Assembly: GCA_048772705.1 (NCBI GenBank)
Contig: JBLWGC010000082.1
Span: 186,001 to 250,000, forward strand
DNA length: 64,000 nt
Source of the DNA: Leidyana gryllorum EB-2025a
Lineage: Eukaryota; Protista; Apicomplexa
Direction of reading: 5' to 3'
Shown here: piece by piece, positions 9,349 to 64,000 of the stretch
How positions within the stretch are numbered: the first letter of the stretch is position 1
Layout: each line of letters begins with the position of its first letter
Notes under the pieces: generated by a model
Databases searched by the model: none
Told to the model about the DNA's origin: nothing
What the model saw: only the letters and a program-made list of their open reading frames with translations
Position numbers and translations under genes: made by a program

Positions 9349-12127
9349 CGTGGTGGGGGATAGGGCAGGACGGGGCGCTTACGATCATAGCTTGCGACTG
9401 TGCGTCGTTGGGGTCGGAACTCGAGAGTGCTCTCTGAGAGTCTGGTGTCTGCGAGAGATCCGGCGGCTGTGGCCAAGATAGCGTCATCGAGCCAAAGCAA
9501 TAAACGTTCAATTAGAGGTACGGCCATTTGTTCATTTCGCTCAGCTTGCGCGAGCGTTCGTCTGTGAGCCGCGGAGGCGTCTATGGAGCCTCTGGCTGTG
9601 TTGACGATAGCGGAGACGGATCTCTTGCTGGAGTAGAGGGAGCCTTGTCGGCGGCTGTGAATGCTCATTGTGGCGCGACCTCCGCTGGAGGGCGGCTGCA
9701 CTCGGTGTAAATTGGCATCGATCGCAGTCGGTTTGTTGCCGGTTGCGAATGGAGGCGAGTCCACTGCCGGCATGAGGGGACTGGGGGGCGACCGGGAGAG
9801 ATTTATGGGGTCCTGTTTGACCACACGGCGGACCCCGCGAGTGGGCGAGCTATTGAGGGGTTTGGATGAGGGCGTACCACTGTCGAGTGGTGACTGCGAG
9901 GAGGAGTTTGAGGTTATCGGGAGCCCAGGAACGATCATTGACGACGCCTTCCGGTTGTCTATGGAAGAAGGGCGGAACTCTGGGGGCGAAATTGAAGTGT
10001 CAAGTTGTGGAGGTCGTCAGCGTCAGCGTCGCACTCACCCGTATCGGCTAAATCAGAGACTGGTTGACAACAACAATTAGCCAATTTGAACCTTCTCGCG
10101 GGAACGCGAGGTCTCAGAGGAGTGCTTAAAGATTGCAGTTTGGGCGGTGAAGCGGTGGCGGGGTGTGAGTGATCGGAAGCTGAGCCAGCGGGAGAGTCTT
10201 TGTGCGTCGGGCCGCCGCGAAGACCTCCAATATCACGAAGTCTGCGAGCGGAGCCGCGCCCCGGGAACACTGATGAGGAGTTGGGCTGTTGTGGTGGATT
10301 TTCTATCAGAGAGTGAGTGGTGATGTCCTCGCCGGCAGCCGTATAGTTCGGCTGCCCCATGTCAACGGAAGATCTGTCCCCCCCGGCCGTCGGGACGGAC
10401 AGAGATGACGACGAGGCTGACGACTCGTCATTATACTCGTCCACGGGGGGAACGGCACCACCCCTTCTGTGCAATAAGGAGCTGCGCTCCTCCAAGGCGG
10501 CGTCGTTCAGACGACTGCTGAGTGACCGGGCGGGGATGAGGGGAGGTGACTTGGCGTGAGTTGGGGAATTGAAGAAACGTTTTGGGGGCGAAGATCCGAG
10601 TGTTCTCAACCGCTTTCGACTAAAAGTCGATGAACTCGACGAGCTGCTGTCCTCGTCACTATTGCGGTGCATCTCTCCTCCGGGCGATGAGGGTCCGGGC
10701 GGCGCTATGTCGGCCCCGCCCGTAGTCCCGAGAACTGTATATATCATCTGCAGAGGGTCATCGATGGGTGTATCCGGGTTGGAGGGCGCTAAATCCGCCA
10801 CACGCTTCCGTAACAAAGTCGACTTGAGAGCCGCCAAACTCTCACGGAGCGCGACTAATTGTTCAAGTGTGGGTGTCCGGGTGTTATTGGTAGTCAGATT
10901 CAAGTTGCCGCAGTTACTGACATCCCCTTTGTTGTGGACTCCGGCGGGGTCGATGGTGGTCCAACCCCCATCGGTGTGTCGCATCGACGGATCGCTGTCC
11001 CGTTGGACATCGTCGCCTCCGCCGCCTGAGGTCACGGACCCTTTGCGAGCCGACTCGATGAGAGGGGCTGGTCGAGTGATGCCTCCTCCTCCTCCAGCGC
11101 GCACATCAGCCCGACTTCTTAGCGCCTCTGGACTGAGATATACGTCCGGCAGGGGCGAGGGGGGGCCGTTGTGGTAGCCGTGGGCTCGCGGCAAAACCCC
11201 CAATAGCGAGAGAAACTCGGCGTTGGTGGTAACAGCGGATTTGAAACTGCCCATATGAGAAGGTATTGTGACGTTCATTCATCCACCCACCCCTCTCACT
11301 CACTCAGCCAGAGAAAGTCGCGAATGGCCCTCACAGTCCACCGAATGTGCGACTCTGCTAAATATATTCCCGATGAGCTCCGGACTCAGAGCTCCACGTC
11401 TCGTTTCTCCAACCAGCTGCTCTCGTGTGGTCTGTAGACTCTTGACGACCAATGCGAATTCAGGCAGAGTCAACTGATTCTCAACCTCCGCCCAGTCGTA
11501 CCCGAGCATCTCCTCTAACGTAGAAGTGGAGTGCACATCATAGGATAGGGAGGAATGAGTCTTTCTGCTCTCGCGCACCATACTGGCGGCAGCGGTGGGT
11601 GTGCGGCGAATCCGGCAGCAGGAAGAGTGATCTTCCCGGTTAAAGGCGTAAAGTTGTTCCCAGCGCGCCTGCAGACCCCCCGAGTCTGTGACTGGCTGCC
11701 ACAGCGGAGTCAGCTGCGGTTTGACTGCCCCACTGGGCTTCAGGATGCGGTACGATAGCGATAAGCGCTCGTCGTCGGAGCCCGTGATCATAATGGCGAC
11801 GCTCGATCCCCACTCGAGAAAGTCGAGCACGTCGTCGTTGAGCCAATCAAAGGCTCCAAAGAGGCGTTGGCACAGAAAACTGTCATCCAGCAGAGCCAAC
11901 ATCCCGAGAGAGGTCTTGAAACGCGCGTAGTTGATGAACCCATTGGGTGCCAGACGACGAAAGCGGGTATAGAGTAACGCACATACCTGCTGGTCCAGAT
12001 TAGTGAGGCGATTAATCTCGCGCAAAAGTCTTCTGGGCGGCTCTTCAGGTAATAAAGGAGTGTTCTGTGTTGGCCTGCAGCATCCTGACGTAGCGGGAAT
12101 TGTTTGAATTGCCGCAGGCCGCAGCAT
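7311..12127 (-). CDS. PIP5K: Phosphatidylinositol-4-phosphate 5-kinase with N-terminal NCS/calcineurin-B-like EF-hand domain
   Basis: N-terminal EF-hand region (CQRLFGAFDWLNDDVLDFLEW...GSDDERLSLSYRIL), long low-complexity linker, then PIPK motifs HFGHESWNMVLNMMVGLR, EGKSGALFYYTADGRFLVKT, RYDLKGS, LDYSLLFGIH and GVIDVF. Spliced stop TGA at 7313-7311. Confidence 0.85.
8052..8137. repeat. Intronic minisatellite, about 2.7 copies of a 32-bp unit
   Basis: CGCAGAGGCAAACACGGT starts at 8052, 8084 and 8116 (period 32), inside a PIP5K intron. Confidence 0.9.
9309..9345. repeat. (GT)n microsatellite in a PIP5K intron
   Basis: About 18 perfect GT units. Shorter (GT)/(CA) tracts lie near 232-251, 46694-46714 and 48771-48786. 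Confidence 0.95.
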
Positions 12128-31024: not shown

Positions 31025-32379
31025 TCACCGGATCCGAGGTCGCGGATCCGTTGGGAGACCTGCTACTTCACCCTGCCGGGCATACATGCGAGCTAGACCC
31101 GGATGGACTTGACACGCAGGCAGAGGCGTAGAGGAGGCGGGCTGGTAATCCCACTCGTATTCCCACCGCGGGGGCCAGTTGAGGTCATTGGAGTCCACGC
31201 TCTTGCGTACGACGGGAGGTGGCGTAAAAGGAGGAGGAGGTAGGGCGGTCGTCGGTGGCAACGGAGGCCTCTCTTTGACAGCAGCAGTGGTGACGGGAGG
31301 AGGAGCAGCAGCAGCACCCGCTGATGTGTGACTGTTATTCGGGCGAGGGTAGGCGGCCGGGCGTCGGCCGTTGGGGTTTGAGCGCCAGCTGAGTTGTTGT
31401 TGTTGCTGTTCGCGTTCGCGTTCGCGGTCTCGATCGCGGTCTCGGTCTCGACCAGACTGTTGATAACGCCATATAGCAAAAGCGACCTGGGCGTTGAAAC
31501 TGCTGTTCTCATTATTAGTACCAGTTGGACCTTGTTCTCGCCGCCGCTGGGGACGTGCGGCCTTTGGGGGCTGCTGGGCAGGAAGGGGAGGTGGAGGGGC
31601 TTGGGTTTGCTTCTCCGCCGGCGCAGTTTTGGCCTCCTCCACCGCCTCTTTCTTGGGGGGGTTCGGAAACGGCGCCCACGATGCGGGATGCACTTTGAAC
31701 AGCATGGGATTGTTGTGATTAGCACTAGTGGTATTGAAGAGTCCATGGCCTCCCATGGCGCCGATAGCGGCTGCGGTATTGGATAACTTCACTTGACTCT
31801 CCGGTGAATTATTCTCATTGGGCGACCACATTCGGTCAATTCGGCTGCTGCTACACGCGTCGCCCCCACTCAATAAGGCGCCTAACCGCCCAGACGACGA
31901 AGAAGTGGACGTCACTCCTCCTCCATTGTCCTTACGCTTCTTCGCCGCTTCAGCTGCTTCACCCAATGTAGGACCCACGGTCGCAGACTGCCGCGTCTCT
32001 ACAGCCAACAGTTCTTCGTCAGGCGTCGTCGCAGCCGCCGCCGATGCAGCCATCGGGTCCTTCACGACCAACGACCACGGTTTATTCATCGCTGCCTTGG
32101 AGGCCGCCCGCTGCGAACTCGAAGAAGGCTTCGCAGCCGCCTTTTTACCCACCCCCAACAGCGCTACCAGGGAAGGGGCATTCGCTGCTGGCTTCGCCGC
32201 TGCTGAGGGTGCCACATTCAGCCTCCCTAGAATCTTCCGAGACCCGAACTGCTGACTGCCGCTATTACTTGAGCAGAGTAGGCCCTCATCCATGTGCTTC
32301 TCCCACCTAGCGGGCTTACAAGACACTCGAAAATTTGTGTCAATGGACAGACAATAATCTCAACTTGATCATCGTCCAT
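31025..32379 (-). CDS. Low-complexity Ala/Pro/Ser-rich hypothetical protein with an RD/RE tract
   Basis: 433-aa ORF. Probable first exon MDDDQVEIIVCPLTQIFECL joined in phase 0 by a GTAAG...CAG intron (32319-32252). Alternative start is ATG 32293. Confidence 0.55.
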
Positions 32380-37607: not shown

Positions 37608-39473
37608 ATGACGAAAAGCTCTGCCTATGAGAGCTTACGTCGGGAAGTCTTCAGCAGCTTCCAAAAGGACCAAACTGAGCGACTTCACGTGGCAGAAGCC
37701 TTAAACGAAACTACACGCCTCCAAGAACACATCACATGTGTGAGTATTTTATTTTGATCATTAATTGGATCGGTACCCATTCAGGCTCAATCTGACATCG
37801 TCAATTCCAACCAGATTGCTGCAAACCATGCTGGGGAGCTCGAAAGGATGTCCGGGCAACTGGCCTTCATTGATCGAGCACATAATGTTATTGCGAGTGT
37901 TGCGGTATATCTACGGACGGTACAAGAAGGACTGGACAAGACCAGAGATTTAGAAGTACGTCGATGAAAAGCTTGATTGCTACATAGATCGTACAGGCTC
38001 GTTTGGCTACTGCCAAAACGTCTTATAACGCCATGGCCACGCGATTGAATGAATGTGTTACGGCTTTGAGCGCATCCAATCAGCAGCAGTAAGTCAGCGT
38101 CGTTCTCTGGTAGATGACGATCATACAGCCGGGAAGTCACTAAGGCTATCGTAGCCCTTACTTCGGCTTTGGAGAGTTTGGACGTTGAGATTGCATTGAA
38201 ATCAGAGGAGTTGGTGGCCTCTAAAGAACGTCTCGAGGTGGCTTCCACTATCGCTGCACGGGAGCACGAAGAGTATTTACACGTCTGTGTCAAATGGGAA
38301 TCGGTGAAAGAAAAGGACGGCGTCCTTATTCAGCATGAAGCCGAGCTGCGTGAGATGATTGACTCATTGATTGTCAGCGAAAGGCAACTACATCGACGGG
38401 TACAAGCTGTGGAGAACTTGATGGAGCGGAAGCTCCCTGCAGCCCAGAAAGCGATTGCTCAGCTACGAGAAGCGGCAGAACTCGAGAGGTCACGGATGTC
38501 GTGTCGTCGAAGTCACCAGGCCACTCTTGACTCTCTGCGGGAGGAGGAGCGTTGTCGCCAAAGCAAGATCAACGAGCTGACTGAGCAACGTTCGCAACTG
38601 CATGACAGTAATGAACGGAGTGCTGCTTGTCGGAAGCAGGCCGAGGCGAACTTGGAGCCTCTGCTGAGCAGACTTGCTGTGGTGAAGCAGAAGTGTACTG
38701 AGTTGCAAAGTGATCTCGACGATGTTGCGGCGGCGGCTGCCAAATTCTCGCGAGAAGCTGAGGATCATGAGAAGGAGCTTGGGGAGAAGACTCGCTTGCA
38801 TCAAGTGGGCCACAACGAGATCGATCGCGCTCGGAGCCGACTTCGTGATACTGAGATGTGCGTCGCAGAGCTCAACAGAGAAACTGAACGGCGGCGGAAA
38901 GCAAGACAAGCAGCATTAGAAGCTCATGAACGAGAAATCTCGGAGATCCGTGAAGCACGAGAGGCCAAACGTGCTGCTGCTGCGGAAGCTACCAAGGAGA
39001 TGAAGGCCGCGTACGACCGGATTCGCCATTGTCCCCTGACCTCCGAGCAGATCACCAACCAGGCACATGCCCTAAAGGCGACTGTTCATCCGGCTTTACG
39101 TCATCGTCTGAACGAGATAGCCAATCAGACAGAGGACACCGAGAGGTCATGTTCCGAGATCCAGACGCTCCTTGCCAGCGATGATGACACCCGGACAGGG
39201 TCTGATCCGGTGGAGAAGAGCTCGCGTTCCTCGGAATTGCGGGCCGCACAGCAGCAGTTCGAGTCCTGTCAAGCAAGTGCTCGCAACCGAGCAAAGATGG
39301 CGCTAGCCAGTCACCGAGTGGACCTGCAGGTCCAATCTCTGACCTCCAAGGAGGCAGCCACTATTACCAAGCTGTTGGATGTACAGCACGAGCGCCAGCA
39401 GCAGAGAAATGCTATGGTGGAGGCGAAGCAACGCGAGATTGATGCCCGTTTGAATGCTACGAACAACCGTTGA
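37608..39473 (+). CDS. Long coiled-coil protein of unknown function
   Basis: 434-aa E/R/A/Q-rich heptad ORF plus upstream spliced exons from ATG 37608. Confidence 0.7.
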
Positions 39474-41553: not shown

Positions 41554-43717
41554 TCAATAAAAGGAGCATTCAGTACACATCCAGGCGGAGTCTATATCGG
41601 GGACACAGTAATTGGCAGACAAATAACAAGCGTATCCACAGATATGGTTAGCGTTGAATTGAAGCGGCCCTGGGAGTTTGAGTTGACTCAAATCCACCGA
41701 CATTGGATTCAATTTAATCCCTATACTCCCCCATTCACTTTCGGCAAACTTTGGGTTCAGAATGTCCAATACCTCATACGGTATCTCTATCATATTGACG
41801 TGATCGGCATACTGATCTCGACCTTCACCAAAGTTTCCAAAGTTATTTCTCGAGTCGCATCGCGGCAAACCGTGTTGATTAGCGCACGGCAGATTTGGCA
41901 CTGCGTCCAGCTCCACAACCCAAGTCCGGGTGTTCACCAGCTGTTCCAATAAAGACGCTGCTGCCTCGTTCAGTGATCTCGCCGGTGCAAAGGTAACCAG
42001 ATCAACTTTTGCTTGTCCTGCGAAGGTCACGGCCAAAGCCAAGGCCGCCACATTTGCCATCCCTCCACCGAGCGAGTGGCCCGTAACCATCAAATGTGGC
42101 TTCTTACACTCATTATTCGACCACTCCCGTACCAATCGGGCTTCCACTGGGGGCAGAATGGGAGCTAACAGCTCCAGAAAACCCGAGTGAACCAGAACTG
42201 AGCTGTCGTGCGGCAGAGGCGAGAGCCCTGTAGTAAAATCCTTGCGCCATTCATAGTCTGTCGCTGTCCCCCGTAGCACCAGCACTATCTCACAAGGGTC
42301 GTCGACTCCTTGCAGCAGAAATCCAGACGACATACTCGTGCTGTTGGTCACCGATTGAGTATTCGAAGCTGTTTTGAGAGTGTGTGTGTGTGCATGTCTC
42401 CGGTGGCGTCACCTGCCCTCCCGCCTACCTGGCTGGTTCAGTCGTATGTCCTCCATGATGTCATAGCCGGGCAAGAGCTGTTTCGGGTTCGGGTGTTCCA
42501 TACTGCACAGACTCTGTTCATTGGCCCAGGAACTCGCACCGAAAACAGCCCTCAACAGCCAATACGACAGGCGCCCCTCTTTCTGTACCTGCAGCAGAGT
42601 GGCGTCGTCATCTGGGCTGTCGAGGTGGGTGTCGATGGTCAAACCCGTAGCTCCGGGATCCTCCTCCTTCAACAGGTTCCCCTGAGTACACTTCACCATA
42701 GGCACTGAGGCTCCCACTGCTCCTTTGCAGGAGGGCGCTACTCCTTCGGCGCATCCCAGGACTGTCGGAGGAGACGTTTTTCGGGAGACATTTGGGGGTA
42801 TGTCACTCACATTCGCCAAGAAGGGTCATTGTCGCACAGCTGTAGAGAGTCGCTATTTCGTCGTCATCTTCAGCAACGAGATTGTCGGCAGCGGTACATA
42901 GGAGAGAGCCCAGATTACGCATTGGAGACTTGAGGGCTGCCGTGAGACCCGTAATTTCGGGGTACTCGAAAAGTCCCTTGAGAATAGTTTTGATCATCGG
43001 AGATCTGAGGTAATCACTGAAGGCTTCCCGATCTTCTTTAAACTCTTTATTGAACTGATTTCCCACAAAATTAAGGCCTCCCAGCAGTTTGTCCAGCACA
43101 CTGGAGATCGCATTGGTAGTGTCTTTGTCGGCAAAATCATCATTCACAGCTACTGAGGAACGAGCGAGAAATCTGTCCGTGAACGGTGTCTCTCCGCTCG
43201 GTGTCTCTCCGCTCAATGTCACAGCCGTGGCATTCTGTAAGAGAGATTGTAGCCCTTTGAGCTTATTCAGTCCCATCGAGGACGACCCCACGATACCGTG
43301 AACGTCCCATTGCAGATTTTCGTTCAACTGATTGACGTGATGAGTGAGATTTCCCAAAACTTCCTCGAGATTACTCGCGCTGCTAATGTCATTCATAGCG
43401 CTCACTGCGGCAGCGCTCAGACGCCGCTTGGTGCTGGTCGACGACAGGGCGGAGGAAATCGAATTCTTCACCACCCCAAACAACACATCATTCACTGTGC
43501 GGGGAGTCATAACCTCCTGATACAGTTCCATCAGGGTCCGAACATTGAGAATATTCGCTGGTTCACTGGTGAAGCCATCAGATAGCCCGAGGCTTCTTTC
43601 AAATGCAGTGCCGACCCCCAAGGCACATATAGGTGAGGGGGGCCGGTGTTCGAAAAGTGTTCGGGGAATACCAACGAAACCATAACACCCTGTCCATAAT
43701 AAGGATGAAAACCGCAT
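41554..43717 (-). CDS. Class 3 lipase with long N-terminal extension (probably secreted)
   Basis: IVLVLRGT, VHSGFL, VTGHSLGGGMA (GxSxG), VTFAPAR and DAVPNLP. Joined through introns to the upstream ORF starting MRFSSLLWTGCYG. Confidence 0.85.
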
Positions 43718-43730
43718 ATGGGGCTCAAAA

Positions 43731-45350
43731 ATGACCAATTTGTGGCTGCTCGCTTGGGCACTGGCAGCCGCAGCGGCCGAGAAATCGGAACCAACCACTA
43801 CTGATTTCCAGGATGTACTAGAAATACACCGACTACCTAATGGAGGCGCCCATTTTAGAGCTGTCACGGAATGGGACACCACTGTCTTCAGCGATTTACC
43901 CTATCTAACGCAACTAGTCTTCACATCTGGCTTCGCAAGAGCCTACGCAACACTCACGCAAGGCCGACGCTTCCACGAAGAATGGAACACGCAGCCCACC
44001 CGGGGCCAGGGCTTTTTTGTCTATGAGGCAGAATTGTCGGCAAACGACAACAAATATGAATTCGAACGCGATGTCAATAGGACCTTCCTTATATTCGAAG
44101 CCATGACTGGGGCGCCCGTTTCCGAGTCCGTCGTTACACCTCTAAGCCTCGACACAGACAATAAGTGAGCTTGCGTGCTGCTTGGTGCAGATCTTTTGTC
44201 GTCAAATGATGACTCTGGGATGCGACAATCATCCCTGACTGCCACTTTGAGTTGTTGACGGCTTCAGGTTGCGCGTGGGGGCCCGAACACACGAAGATCG
44301 ATTGTGTACGAACACAATGACTAAACTATATAGAACGCTCAGTTGTCGATCCACGGTTAGTGTGGCTGTCAACATCTACAATTTCCATTTGATGATCGTT
44401 TCAGAGCGGAGTTGTACCAGGTGTTGGTCGTTATTTGCATTTGGGGGAGTTCAGAGGAGTCAAAATACTTATTGAAGGTCGGGCCGATGAGCGCGCCCAC
44501 GTGCGGTTTGGGGTCGAGTTGACATTGAGGGAAGCTCACGAGGACAGGATCCAAGATATTATCAATTTCCCTCCCTGTGCGGCTGCAGCACACACCTACG
44601 TGGTTGAGCACACCGCGAATGGCACGGTGACTGCGCGAGAGCGGTTGTGGGACGGGTCCTTCGAGGTACTGCCCGAGATACCGGCCGTGGCTGTGAATCA
44701 ACAGGCGATTGGTCCTGCGTCACACGTGCGAAGGTTGCAGCACCCTTTGGGGGCCTCCGTGCGACGTCTTTCTGACGCCTCCTATTCGAAGATTCAGTCG
44801 GCAACGGGCGTCAAGAGTCGGTGAGTGCGAGGGCGGCACTGGATATCTGTCACTTTGCTTTGGCGTCAGATTGTTTGATCGGCTCCCGAGTTGGGCGCGT
44901 CCACATCGGCTGCGAAGCGAGGCGAGATATGGCGAGTGCGTCAAAAGTGTTGAAGTCGGTACGATCGAGAGAAAGAGAGGTCATCCGAGTTGGATGCTGG
45001 AAGCTGACATTGTCAAAAGCTCAGAGGACGAGGGGGAGTGTTACCTCCAAGTTCCTCTGCGTCACAAGTTTCCGCAGTGGTCGAATTATATCTGGACGAC
45101 GGTGGGAGGGTTTGACACCGATGCATCGTGGCTGGTTGAGGACACGGCACAGGTGGCTTCGGTGTCTGGAAGCCATCCGGACGCGTGGCTTTTGGCTCCG
45201 TTCATTGATATCTGTAAGCATTAAGCATTTCACACCCCCCCCTGGACACACTATTTCGCAGCGGCGTTCTTCAACATTGTAGCTATTTCGTGTCTGAGCA
45301 TTATGCTGCTGTACAGTCGGACTGTGAAGACGCTGATTACGGTCACTTAG
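43731..45350 (+). CDS. PIGT: GPI transamidase subunit PIG-T/Gpi16
   Basis: Signal peptide, DVLEIHRLPNG, TLTQGR, EDRLCTNTMTKLYRTLSC (PIG-T EVVCTENLTPWKKLLPC) and C-terminal FNIVAISCL TM. Stop TAG 45348-45350. Confidence 0.7.
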
Positions 45351-55500: not shown

Positions 55501-55911
55501 CGCCGGCTTTGTGGGGGCAGTTACAGCTACAGGAGGCTCAGCTTCCGCTTTCCTTCTCATCTTAGTCGGAGGAGAGGCACATGACTCTGTCTGTATGGTT
55601 ACTCTGAGAGGCAGCTCACGACGCCCCTCTGTAGTTACGCCCAGTTGCAGTACAGCAGGCCACCCCTGCGAAGGTGTCCGCACCTTCAAAATACCATTCT
55701 CAATCACCGCCACAAGGTCGATCATCTTTGAGTCCGCCGTCAATTCACGGGTTCCCTGCGGCGTTAAGGTCATCAAGACAGCCGCCAGTTCGGTGCGATG
55801 CGCCGTCATAGCGTCGCGAATCTCTGCTGCTATTGTTAAGTCGCATGAATATTCTTTCAATGTCAGGTTGAACTCGTGGATCACTTCACGGCCCACAGCG
55901 TAAACTCGCAT
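49587..55911 (-). CDS. Very large (~2000 aa) Pro/Ser/Gln-rich protein of unknown function
   Basis: ORFs 53881-55911 and 49587-53681 join in frame through two GTAAG...CAG introns around a Gln/Pro-rich mini-exon. A further donor near 49676 leaves the true 3' end uncertain. Confidence 0.7.
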
Positions 55912-56010
55912 TCTCAGCTAATTTCCAACTAAACACCAAGAGTTCCTCACCTTTCAAGACTATTTTTTTCAAACACCCCTAACCCTACACCCCAAACTAG
56001 GGTTAACAGT

Positions 56011-56632
56011 ATGGCACTATCAATACGCCCAGCCGTCTGCGAAGACCTTTTCAGCATACAGAGATGCAATCTGGCCTGCCTCCCCGAGAACTATCAAGCG
56101 CAATTCTACTTCTTCCATCAACTATCCTGGCCAGCTTGCCTCTTTGCCGCTGAAGACTCCAATGCAGACATCGTTGGATATGTACTCAGCAAAATGTAAG
56201 TCCCAATCGTCGGAGATCACCCAAACATTCATCACACAGGGATGACGAATATACTGCTGGTGTCAAACCCAAGGGGCATATAACGAGTCTCGCTGTATTG
56301 CGATCACATAGACAGGCTGGCCTCGCCAGCGGTATCATGAAAGCTGCTCGTAAGTGCTAGAAGACTAAATGACGGACCCAACATACATTCGCCACCCATA
56401 GATGCCGCAATGCAAAGATCATATGACGGAGCTGGATCCAGTCTTCATGTGCGAGTGTCCAATCGAGCTGCATTCTCCTTGTACTGTGATGTTCTAAAGT
56501 ATTAGTAAGTCGAGAATGTCCTACACCCAATACAGATCTGCTCTACCCCACAGCGTCGCCCAAGTCGAAAGTAGCTACTATTCAGATGATGAAGATGCGT
56601 TTTCTATGCAAAAAGAATTCTTTCTCAAATGA
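56011..56632 (+). CDS. NAA10: N-terminal acetyltransferase A catalytic subunit Naa10/Ard1
   Basis: [59 protein letters not shown] and [11 protein letters not shown]. Three introns. TGA at 56630-56632. Confidence 0.95.
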
Positions 56633-57069
56633 TACCCTCTGCACCTGATAATGCTGAAACTAGGGCTCTGCAGGCCCGCCAAGATCGTACAGACTATCTC
56701 GGACATGTAGAAGCCTCCCTAGGCCGTGTCTTGGAGAGTACTGGCTCAATCATTGGGATGATTGGAGAAACCAATTATCAACGAATCATATTGGGGGAAG
56801 CAGCAGACACACAAGGCGAAGGCCAAGATGCTATGTGGGTTGGCGATCCAGCCAAAGACAGTGCAAAGCTACAAAATGAGATTGACGTCTTCCTAGAAGC
56901 TGTTGAAGGTGTATGTGCGAAATTGCACGAACAAATTGACAAGACCCCCGGACCCCGTCGCGTGCGCAGACCTGCATATCTGGATACACTCGCCTACGAA
57001 AACTTCAAAGAAGGCGTGGCCGTCCAGCGACGGATGCAAGCACGCCTGCGAGAAGTGTCTGAGCAGTAG
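56629..57069 (+). CDS. MED11: Mediator subunit Med11-like
   Basis: LGHVEASLGRVLESTG and LQNEIDVFLEAVEGVCAKLHEQI match the two Med11 helices. 146 aa, intronless. Confidence 0.6.
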   Translation: MIPSAPDNAETRALQARQDRTDYLGHVEASLGRVLESTGSIIGMIGETNYQRIILGEAADTQGEGQDAMWVGDPAKDSAKLQNEIDVFLEAVEGVCAKLHEQIDKTPGPRRVRRPAYLDTLAYENFKEGVAVQRRMQARLREVSEQ

Positions 57070-57112: not shown

Positions 57113-57688
57113 ATGGAGGTATTGAGCAGCCGAAACAATCATCCGGGGAGTTTTGTGAGAAGTTTGCGCAATCCATTCACCCCTGAGCACGCTAAAGACT
57201 ACTTCAGAAATCTTGGACAAGGTTTGAAGCTACTATGTGAAACCGCGCGCGCTGATCCTGCTGTAAGTTCATCGATTTGCCGGCGTGCTATACCCTTTTA
57301 GATCACTTTGGTACTCCTCATCCTTGCCATTATTTTCGCTGTCGTGGTTTGGCAAGGAATACAAGCCTCGATCGCCCATCTACATCAAGTGCGTATTGCT
57401 GCGCAGACGAAAAGTCAGAGCACAGACGGATCGGGACGCAAAGCCGCTCCCCGCCGAACAACACGAGCTACCGAACGGTAAGCAGTTCCTGGTGATGGTT
57501 TCGCACTCTTTTTCTGTAGTCGCGCGAAAACTGCTGACGATTCTCCCCCAAGGACTCGTTCGAGACCCACCCGCTCAAAATCGGGTTCTTTGGAGTCCGA
57601 GGTCGCTCCAAGTCCTCCGGAGCCAAGTACGGAGAAGACCCCAGCCAAAGCCAAGGCTAAGTCAAAAGCCCGAGCCAAGAGGGCGTGA
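57113..57688 (+). CDS. Small single-pass membrane protein with basic tail
   Basis: Two introns give ...ARADPA|ITLVLLILAIIFAVVVWQG...AKAKAKSKARAKRA*. Confidence 0.55.
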
Positions 57689-62932: not shown

Positions 62933-64000
62933 TCACACCAGCTCGAAGCTATTGAGCTGCTCAACTGCTGTGCGCACCTTCTGCCCAACAGCCTGCTGGT
63001 GACTCAAAGACAGGTTGCTAATAGTACTCAAAGCGCCGTCAAATCCGAGAGCCTCCACAGTTTTCTGGAGCTTGACAGCTTGGGGATCTTCCGGGTCTTT
63101 GTATAAGAGGGCGGCAGCGACACCTTGAATCAAATTTGAATGAGGTAAGTTCAACTCAATTGCGCCGCGAAGAGGCTTAATCAGACGGTCCTCCGGGGAA
63201 AGCTTTCTGATGGGCTCTCGACCGACACGAGTGACGTCGTCCACGATATGAGGGTTCGCATAACGTTTCAAGATCTTTTGGATGTAAGCTTCGTGGTCTG
63301 TGGGATTCAACCCGTAACGAGCTACCAGAACAGCACCGCTCTCCTGCATCGCACCCTCGACAACGGGGCGGATGCGATCGTCCAAAATAGCAGTCCGAAT
63401 CTCTTTGTGGCCATAGAGCTTGCCCAGGTAAGCACAAATTGCATGTCCAGTATTCACGGTCAGCAACTTCCGCTCAACGAAGGCGTCCAGCTTGTCAGTA
63501 AATATCATTTGGTCGATTTGAGGCAAGGGTCCTTTGAATTGCGTCTGGTCAACCACCCATTCACAAAAGTCTTCCACAGTGACTCCCAAGGGATCCTCCT
63601 CCTTGGCGGGTGGGACAATACGGTCAACAGCGCTGTCAACAAAACCAACGTTGGTGTTGGCCCATTCCTTTTCTTCGTCGTTGAGTTCGGCGAGCACGTA
63701 TTCGCGAAGCGTAGATGTTGCACGGATGGCGTTTTCGCAAGCTATAATGTTGATTGGAGTAGTCTTGCCCTTGTCCTTGCGTTCTTTGAGTCCTTTAGCA
63801 ATGGTTCCGGCAATCCGGGGAAGAATGCGCGGACCGACTGCAGTAGTAAGGATATCAGCGGCAACGATTTCGTCCAATACAGCATCCGTATTGCTTAAAA
63901 CAGCTCCTTCGATGTGAACAATGTCGATGTGCTCAGTGTCACCGACCACACGCACCGGGAACTGCTTGCGTCTTTGCAATTCCGTAATTAGCGGGGCCAC
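62933..64000 (-). CDS. mtlD: Mannitol-1-phosphate 5-dehydrogenase (5' end outside window)
   Basis: LTTAVGP, NIIACEN, FVDSAVDRIVP, VEDFCEW, ERKLLTVNTGHA, RYANP.IVDDVTRVGREPIRKL...DRLIKP. Confidence 0.95.
   Translation of the reverse strand: MAPLITELQRRKQFPVRVVGDTEHIDIVHIEGAVLSNTDAVLDEIVAADILTTAVGPRILPRIAGTIAKGLKERKDKGKTTPINIIACENAIRATSTLREYVLAELNDEEKEWANTNVGFVDSAVDRIVPPAKEEDPLGVTVEDFCEWVVDQTQFKGPLPQIDQMIFTDKLDAFVERKLLTVNTGHAICAYLGKLYGHKEIRTAILDDRIRPVVEGAMQESGAVLVARYGLNPTDHEAYIQKILKRYANPHIVDDVTRVGREPIRKLSPEDRLIKPLRGAIELNLPHSNLIQGVAAALLYKDPEDPQAVKLQKTVEALGFDGALSTISNLSLSHQQAVGQKVRTAVEQLNSFELV

Follow-up and report, generated by a model that had tools for sequence, protein, structure and literature searches.

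In the stretch of DNA analysed here (the window, 64,000 nucleotides, corresponding to positions 186001–250000 of contig 82, or C82, in a genome of 15.5 Mb that comprises 237 contigs with approximately 53% G+C), the last codon of one nuclear gene and the first codon of the next are fused into a four-base ATGA. The upstream gene is NAA10, the downstream gene is MED11-like, and the stop and start codons have three bases in common. Two observations are new: the ATGA is conserved for the NAA10–MED11 pair in a distant relative (locus L022), and a stop-to-start distance of −4 forms a sharp peak in 260 kb of the contig. The NAA10/MED11 pair most likely behaves as overlapping transcription units do in microsporidia and nucleomorphs, with a possible parallel in the polycistrons of Cryptosporidium, and only looks like a bacterial operon junction.

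NAA10 and a MED11-like gene share an ATGA

NAA10 is the catalytic subunit of NatA. Here its gene comprises four plus-strand exons, of which the first three give colinear matches, in order, over the GNAT core of NAA10/Ard1. Exon 1 (56011–56195) matches residues 2–60 of NAA10/Ard1 in a phmmer search of the PDB (E 6e-20); a word-index protein search with the same exon was blank. Exon 2 (56240–56349) matches NAA10 residues 68–93 (E 6.5e-5) and carries the acetyl-CoA motif RxxGxA as RQAGLA, with a match to Pfam Acetyltransf_1 at E 0.0019, while exon 3 (56402–56504) matches residues ~98–136 of Naa10/Ard1 (E 0.002–0.003). Every database search was performed exon by exon, and the joined model was used for the frame check only. 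Exon 4 (56554–56632, including the stop codon TGA at 56630–56632) is defined by the sequence, by local translation and by a tblastn match to exon 4 of L022. Local translation of the joined exons gives a product of 158 aa with the C-terminus ...KEFFLK followed by TGA, so that the reading of the initial annotation, in which the spliced frame ends FFLK-TGA at 56630–56632, is borne out.

The three introns all follow the pattern GTAAGT..AG and measure 44 nt (56196–56239), 52 nt (56350–56401) and 49 nt (56505–56553). RNA evidence for them comes from contigs of two small runs, X1 and X2, made from a relative that is 90–95% identical to the strain sequenced here. Introns 2 and 3 are supported as joints, at 56349>56402 (GT..AG) and 56504>56556, respectively, the latter with two substituted letters between its ends, which is equivalent to an acceptor at 56553/56554. 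Intron 1 is supported by a loose end in record 2 of X1, which runs over the joint of exons 1 and 2. Most of the NAA10 substitutions that separate this strain from the relative fall at third codon positions, so that NAA10, too, is subject to purifying selection.

The MED11-like coding sequence is a single plus-strand exon of 146 codons' worth of protein (146 aa, 56629–57069), supported by third-position substitutions, homologues and the Med11 HMM. Its ATG at 56629–56631 lies over the NAA10 stop codon, giving the ATGA at 56629–56632. In the MED11 frame there is a stop codon at 56590–56592 and no in-frame ATG from there to 56629, and the next in-frame Met is residue 44, which lies inside both the first predicted helix (H9–47) and the stretch aligned by Pfam (18–104). 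The ATG at 56629 is the sole possible start upstream of the conserved helices. We thus agree with the earlier reading on both points, namely that this is the only ATG upstream of the first Med11 helix and that the following Met falls within the conserved domain. An intergenic promoter for MED11 is impossible, as there is zero space between the genes. The stretch immediately upstream of the MED11 start is free of ATG for 20 nt here, and for 35 nt in L022.

A series of searches for signals at the junction gave negative results. The motif UGGGA is absent from the 100 nt upstream of the ATGA, both at this locus and in L022, the predicted RNA fold of the junction is less stable than that of shuffled sequences (z +0.88), and Rfam gave no match at the junction. 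By these three checks there is no structured or 18S-complementary element upstream of the viral TURBS type. No slippery heptamer or downstream structure was found at the junction. A search for a promoter motif upstream of 109 crude gene starts gave no positional signal, in a set that is contaminated by internal exons (GTGAGT is enriched).

A 9-mer, CCTACACCC, precedes the ATG of NAA10 by 27 nt (55984–55992) and occurs a second time within NAA10 intron 3, at 56520–56528, which is 109 nt ahead of the MED11 ATG. The window contains three copies where 0.33 would be expected. We considered CCTACACCC as a shared promoter element and rejected it, as elsewhere on the contig it shows no consistent placement before genes.

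The MED11-like ORF is a gene, and probably MED11

Between 56949 and 57048, all of the eight listed differences between the MED11-like frame and the relative fall at third codon positions. The probability of this by chance is (1/3)^8, which indicates that the frame is under purifying selection. Judged from this substitution pattern, the MED11-like ORF is a real gene.

Its identity was approached through profile, sequence and structure comparisons. The Pfam Med11 profile (PF10280) scores 14.8 bits against a gathering cut-off of 26.9, and is thus below threshold; in a scan of the whole genome (15.5 Mb) with the Med11 HMM, the ORF was the sole candidate, at 13.9 bits. An exhaustive phmmer search with the protein gave five small proteins of 116–128 aa (E 2e-8 to 5e-5), four of which also carry a sub-threshold Med11 signal. 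When a profile of six sequences was compared with the PDB, the top three matches were human and mouse MED11 (E 0.0014–0.006), covering the first helix only. An alignment search added only two further named gregarine transcriptome proteins, which EukProt labels Gregarina sp. (Poly) and Protomagalhaensia sp. (Gyna); on these names we take the genome to be that of a gregarine, an apicomplexan parasite. The AF2 model of the protein has three long helices at a pLDDT of 74, and structure rankings place Mediator head chains first or near first, with values that lie within the background for helical proteins (Foldseek E ~0.3, VIA Z 8.6–9.3). The PF06179 profile of Med22, with which Med11 forms a subcomplex of the Mediator head, had no match in the genome, in a scan where the control likewise matched nothing anywhere. 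A word-index protein search with the ORF was blank, exact-protein contig look-ups for the window's ORF and for P0002, P0005 and P0007 found nothing, and the ESM Atlas gave no usable match. Every sequence-based match points to Med11, and the gene is probably MED11, a label that rests on sub-threshold scores. The description "MED11-like" in the initial annotation therefore stands as far as the direction of all sequence-based matches is concerned, but is not carried by the Pfam score, at 14.8 bits against the cut-off of 26.9.

The junction is conserved in a distant relative

The closest homologue of the MED11-like protein, P0001, is encoded on a 27.9-kb Logan contig, at locus L022. There, NAA10 lies directly upstream of MED11 on the same strand, and its three introns occupy the same positions as here (exons at 1134–1318, 1352–1452, 1488–1590 and 1632–1725). 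The two genes again meet in an ATGA, at 1722–1725, where the NAA10 TGA (1723–1725) lies over the MED11 ATG (1722–1724). In the MED11 frame of L022 there is a stop codon only three codons upstream of this ATG, which makes it the sole possible start.

The two loci are well diverged, with MED11 ~35% identical and the NAA10 exons 55–72% identical (72% for exon 1). Measured from conserved anchors, the NAA10 tail of L022 is 15 nt longer and the MED11 N-terminus 18 nt shorter than here. Both length changes beside the ATGA are multiples of three, equivalent to indels of five and six codons. The simplest reading of this alignment is that one ancestral ATGA would have been kept while in-frame indels built up on both of its flanks. 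In the spliced contig of the near relative, no change is listed at 56629–56632 and the change at 56626 is silent, though four of the six differences in this piece are not itemised and so the ATGA is not proven for the near relative.

The adjacency of NAA10 and MED11 is not universal. At loci L023 and L024, from two other organisms, a Lys-rich gene lies upstream of MED11 and a SNU13-like L7Ae gene lies downstream. A metagenome scan using NAA10 exon 1 retrieved 10 NAA10 loci from other eukaryotes, all intronless and all lacking a MED11 neighbour. The orthologous junction between MED11 and the SNU13-like gene takes the form TAATG (−1) in L023 (1295–1299) and a 28-nt gap in L024 (707–740), and from the occurrence of −1 in one organism and +28 in the other it follows that an overlap and a gap can be interchangeable. 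The SNU13-like (L7Ae) gene that follows MED11 in L023 and L024 has one intron, and both genomes are compact.

Upstream of NAA10 in L022, at 1072–1080 and ~55 nt before the ATG, we see GCGCCAAA, which on the opposite strand reads as the E2F-type motif TTTGGCGC. This motif has been reported for Cryptosporidium promoters. No site of this kind is present in the NAA10 promoter of the locus studied here.

A distance of −4 is common on the contig

Stop-to-start distances were collected from C82:1–260000, which comprises the window and 196 kb of flanking sequence, represents 1.7% of the genome and carries no annotation. The stop of every coding-looking frame was paired with every first ATG of a coding-looking ORF, using a codon-usage score trained on long ORFs, and three settings were compared over distances of −40 to +120. 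At setting 1 there are 10 pairs at −4 and one at −1, against a mean of 0.48 at other distances. The corresponding values are 6, 1 and 0.43 at setting 2, and 4, 1 and 0.22 at setting 3; the −4 set behind these counts is not clean, in that at least one of its pairs is an artefact of an intron within a phosphatase-like gene, and a further two are a single duplicated pair. The −4 peak is nonetheless robust, despite the crude method and the small sample. In these 260 kb, −4 is the commonest short stop-to-start distance, about ten times as frequent as any single small positive gap, and small positive gaps of every size occur alongside the overlaps.

The premise that ATGA overlaps are rare in nuclear genes does not apply to this genome, given that −4 tops the short distances in the 260 kb. 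The check for an excess of −4 over chance that was suggested together with it, run on the same 260 kb, gave such an excess (4–10 pairs against means of ~0.2–0.5 elsewhere) and so leaves the idea of coupling unrefuted. An excess at −4 is also predicted by pure compaction.

At C82:36127 (L005:6127), a DnaJ-domain ORF starts in an ATGA on the stop codon of a proline-rich ORF, with the DnaJ profile beginning at residue 5. Another convincing −4 pair involves a dual-specificity phosphatase gene that ends on ATGA. A tandem duplication of ~1.7 kb at C82:106120–108768 (L012) contains the ATGA junction twice, with stops at 108069 and 106364, and neither ORF is found in Pfam. A TAATG (−1) at C82:257703–257705 (L021) precedes a gene with a weak cyclic-nucleotide-binding match, and marks the start of an operon-like run on the minus strand.

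Spacers are short and transcripts cross gene borders

Short GTAAGT..AG introns and intergenic gaps of tens of bases are those of a compact eukaryote. Around the junction, we see 99 nt in the head-to-head gap before NAA10, −4 between NAA10 and MED11, and 43 nt after MED11. The head-to-head gap (55912–56010) separates the ATG of a minus-strand gene at 55911 from the NAA10 ATG at 56011, and two promoters and two 5′ leaders must fit within it. Crude pairing over 260 kb of the contig shows that head-to-head gaps cluster at 86–100 nt. The gap before NAA10 is thus typical, which implies that a promoter and leader of ~50 nt are normal here. On the other side, the next same-strand gene (57113–57688, plus strand) encodes a small membrane protein of no family, with its ATG 43 nt past the MED11-like stop; an RNA joint at 57476>57519 supports its intron at 57477–57518, and its first intron was placed by eye only. 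Very short spacers are the general rule, both in these local gaps and in the distance histogram for 260 kb.

One spliced contig of the relative joins NAA10 exons 1–4 and extends 28 nt beyond the stop codon, as far as 56660. It is colinear over 56556–56660, with no joint, foreign letters or leader. As the NAA10 contig reaches 56660, mature NAA10 RNA includes the MED11 AUG. RNA coverage is then absent from 56660 to 56908, and no contig spans both ORFs. At the other end of MED11, 3′-end contigs from the two runs stop at 57132 and 57130, 61–63 nt past the MED11 stop, and thereby reach 18–20 nt into the next gene (ATG 57113). Positions 57130–57132 may mark a 3′ end or poly(A) site that overlaps the start of the neighbour. 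Transcripts of the relative therefore do extend into neighbouring genes, by 28 nt into MED11 and by 18–20 nt into the gene that follows it, and these brief border crossings look like short 3′ UTRs entering the neighbour. Addition of a spliced leader before MED11 was not seen in the one contig that covers 56556–56660.

Proposed overlapping transcription units and their alternatives

The explanation we favour, and to which we give about an even chance of being correct, is genome compaction with overlapping transcription units, in which each gene would have its own mRNA. Compaction would have pushed two unrelated nuclear genes, NAA10 and a diverged gene for Mediator subunit 11, together until the start of one overlapped the stop of the other, and ATGA would be the closest packing that leaves the amino acids of both proteins unconstrained. 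From then on it would be locked, since the MED11 start requires A, T and G and the NAA10 stop requires T, G and A. NAA10 transcripts would end within the MED11 coding region, and MED11 transcripts would begin in the final exon or final intron of NAA10, so that the MED11 leader would be very short. At 22 nt or less, this leader would avoid every upstream ATG, whereas with a longer one an 8-codon tail, MQKEFFLK, that ends on the shared TGA would be translated first. Bicistronic read-through RNAs, of the kind seen in Cryptosporidium, are probably made as well, but would not serve as the chief template for MED11.

Both the pile-up at −4 and the short distances of all sizes would be expected of a deletion-biased genome that meets a hard boundary. 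Also in favour of this reading are the promoters and leaders of ~50 nt that are normal here, the brevity with which the relative's RNA contigs cross gene borders, and the alternation of −1 and +28 at the junction of MED11 with the SNU13-like gene. As three of the four ATGA bases are locked by two genes and in-frame indels do not displace it, conservation of the junction would likewise follow from compaction alone. NatA and Mediator are not known to share any function for which a fixed stoichiometry would be needed. Their unrelated functions, together with the finding of no reinitiation element, argue against functional coupling of the bacterial type. Several observations count against overlapping units: the 20-nt ATG-free stretch (35 nt in L022) requires an unusually short leader; no promoter motif emerged from the noisy set of crude gene starts; the sole junction RNA is a spliced NAA10 contig running into MED11, which fits a bicistronic mRNA too; the ATGA has survived divergence to ~35% MED11 identity with indels on its flanks; −4 outnumbers any single small positive gap about tenfold; and the sister lineage Cryptosporidium makes transcripts of 2–4 genes.

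The main rival, which we consider rather unlikely, is a single spliced, capped NAA10–MED11 mRNA on which the ribosome would end at UGA and restart at the overlapping AUG, as a general mode of expression. The relative's spliced NAA10 contig is colinear through the ATGA into MED11, the ATGA is kept in L022 despite flank indels of five and six codons, and there is zero room for an intergenic promoter. A hint in the same direction comes from EukProt names, which put MED11 as ORF p3/p4 of 1.8-kb and 5.4-kb transcript contigs. The sharp −4 peak in 260 kb resembles that of prokaryotes, where it is tied to coupling (PMC6728339), and polycistronic mRNAs have been reported for Cryptosporidium parvum (PMC11761812). 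Reinitiation after a long ORF is, however, inefficient in eukaryotes without a dedicated upstream RNA element (PMC10275272), and none was found here. The contig passes the junction by only 28 nt before coverage is lost up to 56908, the functions of NAA10 and MED11 bear no relation to each other, small positive gaps separate many adjacent pairs, and the junction between MED11 and the SNU13-like gene is −1 in one organism and +28 in another. In its broadest form, the proposal would be that gregarines regularly rely on AUGA termination–reinitiation for translating the downstream gene of bicistronic nuclear mRNAs that are spliced and capped, with NAA10–MED11 conserved across genera and approximately one in ten same-strand junctions involved; this we regard as doubtful. 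The alternatives offered in the initial annotation, a bicistronic mRNA or a promoter buried in NAA10, remain as an either/or, upheld by the colinear contig and the lack of intergenic room, and neither of the two is singled out.

A variant that is decidedly improbable has a MED11-specific mRNA arising from within NAA10, such that the last 8–13 NAA10 codons would form a mini-uORF and a restart at the ATGA would tune MED11 output. Reinitiation with zero spacing is usually poor, which speaks against this arrangement, and Met 56606 is a conserved NAA10 residue whose presence needs no further explanation. In its favour, each of the two species has an in-frame ATG shortly before the shared TGA, at a distance of 8 codons here (56606) and 13 in L022 (1684), with no further ATG after it, and eukaryotes, apicomplexans among them, commonly reinitiate after short uORFs (cited in PMC11761812 and PMC10275272). 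It is very improbable indeed that the gene model is wrong, with an upstream exon spliced to MED11, a fusion to NAA10 by frameshift or splicing, or a trans-spliced leader. An AG does follow a pyrimidine-rich stretch at 56614–56615, and MED11 does lie in the −1 frame relative to NAA10. Against this, the MED11 frame is closed by a stop 12 codons upstream here and by one only three codons upstream in L022, homologues in transcriptomes and other genomes are free-standing proteins of 116–128 aa whose first residue is the corresponding Met, the RNA contig shows colinearity over 56556–56660 with no joint or foreign leader, no slippery heptamer or downstream structure is present, and apicomplexans have no known spliced leader (PMC11761812). 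On the strength of the upstream in-frame stops, the colinear RNA and the free-standing homologues, we rejected a frameshift fusion, an upstream exon and a spliced leader for MED11. The upstream spliced first exon that had been named as a possible refutation of the overlap is neither needed nor seen, given the in-frame stop and the colinear contig.

Comparison with known systems

Overlapping transcription units of microsporidia and nucleomorphs, discussed for Encephalitozoon in PMC3629993, resemble the present case in their tiny or negative spacers, in transcripts that enter neighbouring genes, in the lack of a spliced leader and in the unrelated functions of the neighbours. The gregarine pairs differ in that both genes may be spliced, in that the overlap is a precise sharing of stop and start over 4 nt that forms a peak in the distance distribution, and in that the overlap is conserved for the same pair across distant gregarines.

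Cryptosporidium parvum belongs to a sister lineage of gregarines and likewise has a compact genome. It produces capped, polyadenylated transcripts of 2–4 genes without trans-splicing (Xiao et al. 2025, PMC11761812), which co-exist with internal monocistronic RNAs. Its cistrons are separated by inter-ORF UTRs, whereas the gregarine NAA10 and MED11 overlap, as known here from the genome and from short contigs.

Prokaryotic ATGA and TGATG pairs (Huber et al. 2019, PMC6728339) show the identical arrangement and a genome-wide excess at −4, but the present pair is eukaryotic, nuclear and intron-containing, with unrelated functions and no visible operon logic. Viral termination–reinitiation, as in caliciviruses and influenza B, involves stop and start codons with shared bases (AUGA, UAAUG) after a long ORF, together with TURBS elements (PMC10275272); the gregarine junction, in contrast, has no UGGGA-type motif or stable upstream structure.

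If the ATGA reflects only packing, it represents a documented case of how far an intron-bearing nuclear genome can be compressed, and indicates that promoters and leaders of ~50 nt inside the coding sequence of a neighbour can suffice. If ribosomes do restart at AUGA, routine stop/start coupling would, with gregarines, be known for the first time from a cellular eukaryote, and this would bear on how the downstream ORFs of Cryptosporidium polycistronic RNAs are translated. The conserved NAA10–MED11 junction and the −4 peak together offer a clean test case for ribosome restart at a shared stop/start in apicomplexans. For gregarine annotation, overlaps of 4 nt are to be expected, and such genes should be neither merged nor truncated.

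Other ORFs of the window

Long ORFs of 359–439 aa at 9962–11278, 31028–32326, 38169–39470 and 42806–43882 are without any Pfam family, which suggests that much of the proteome of this lineage is unrecognisable by sequence. The minus-strand ORF at 62933–63997 is intronless and has strong mannitol dehydrogenase domains, with E 2e-42 for each half.
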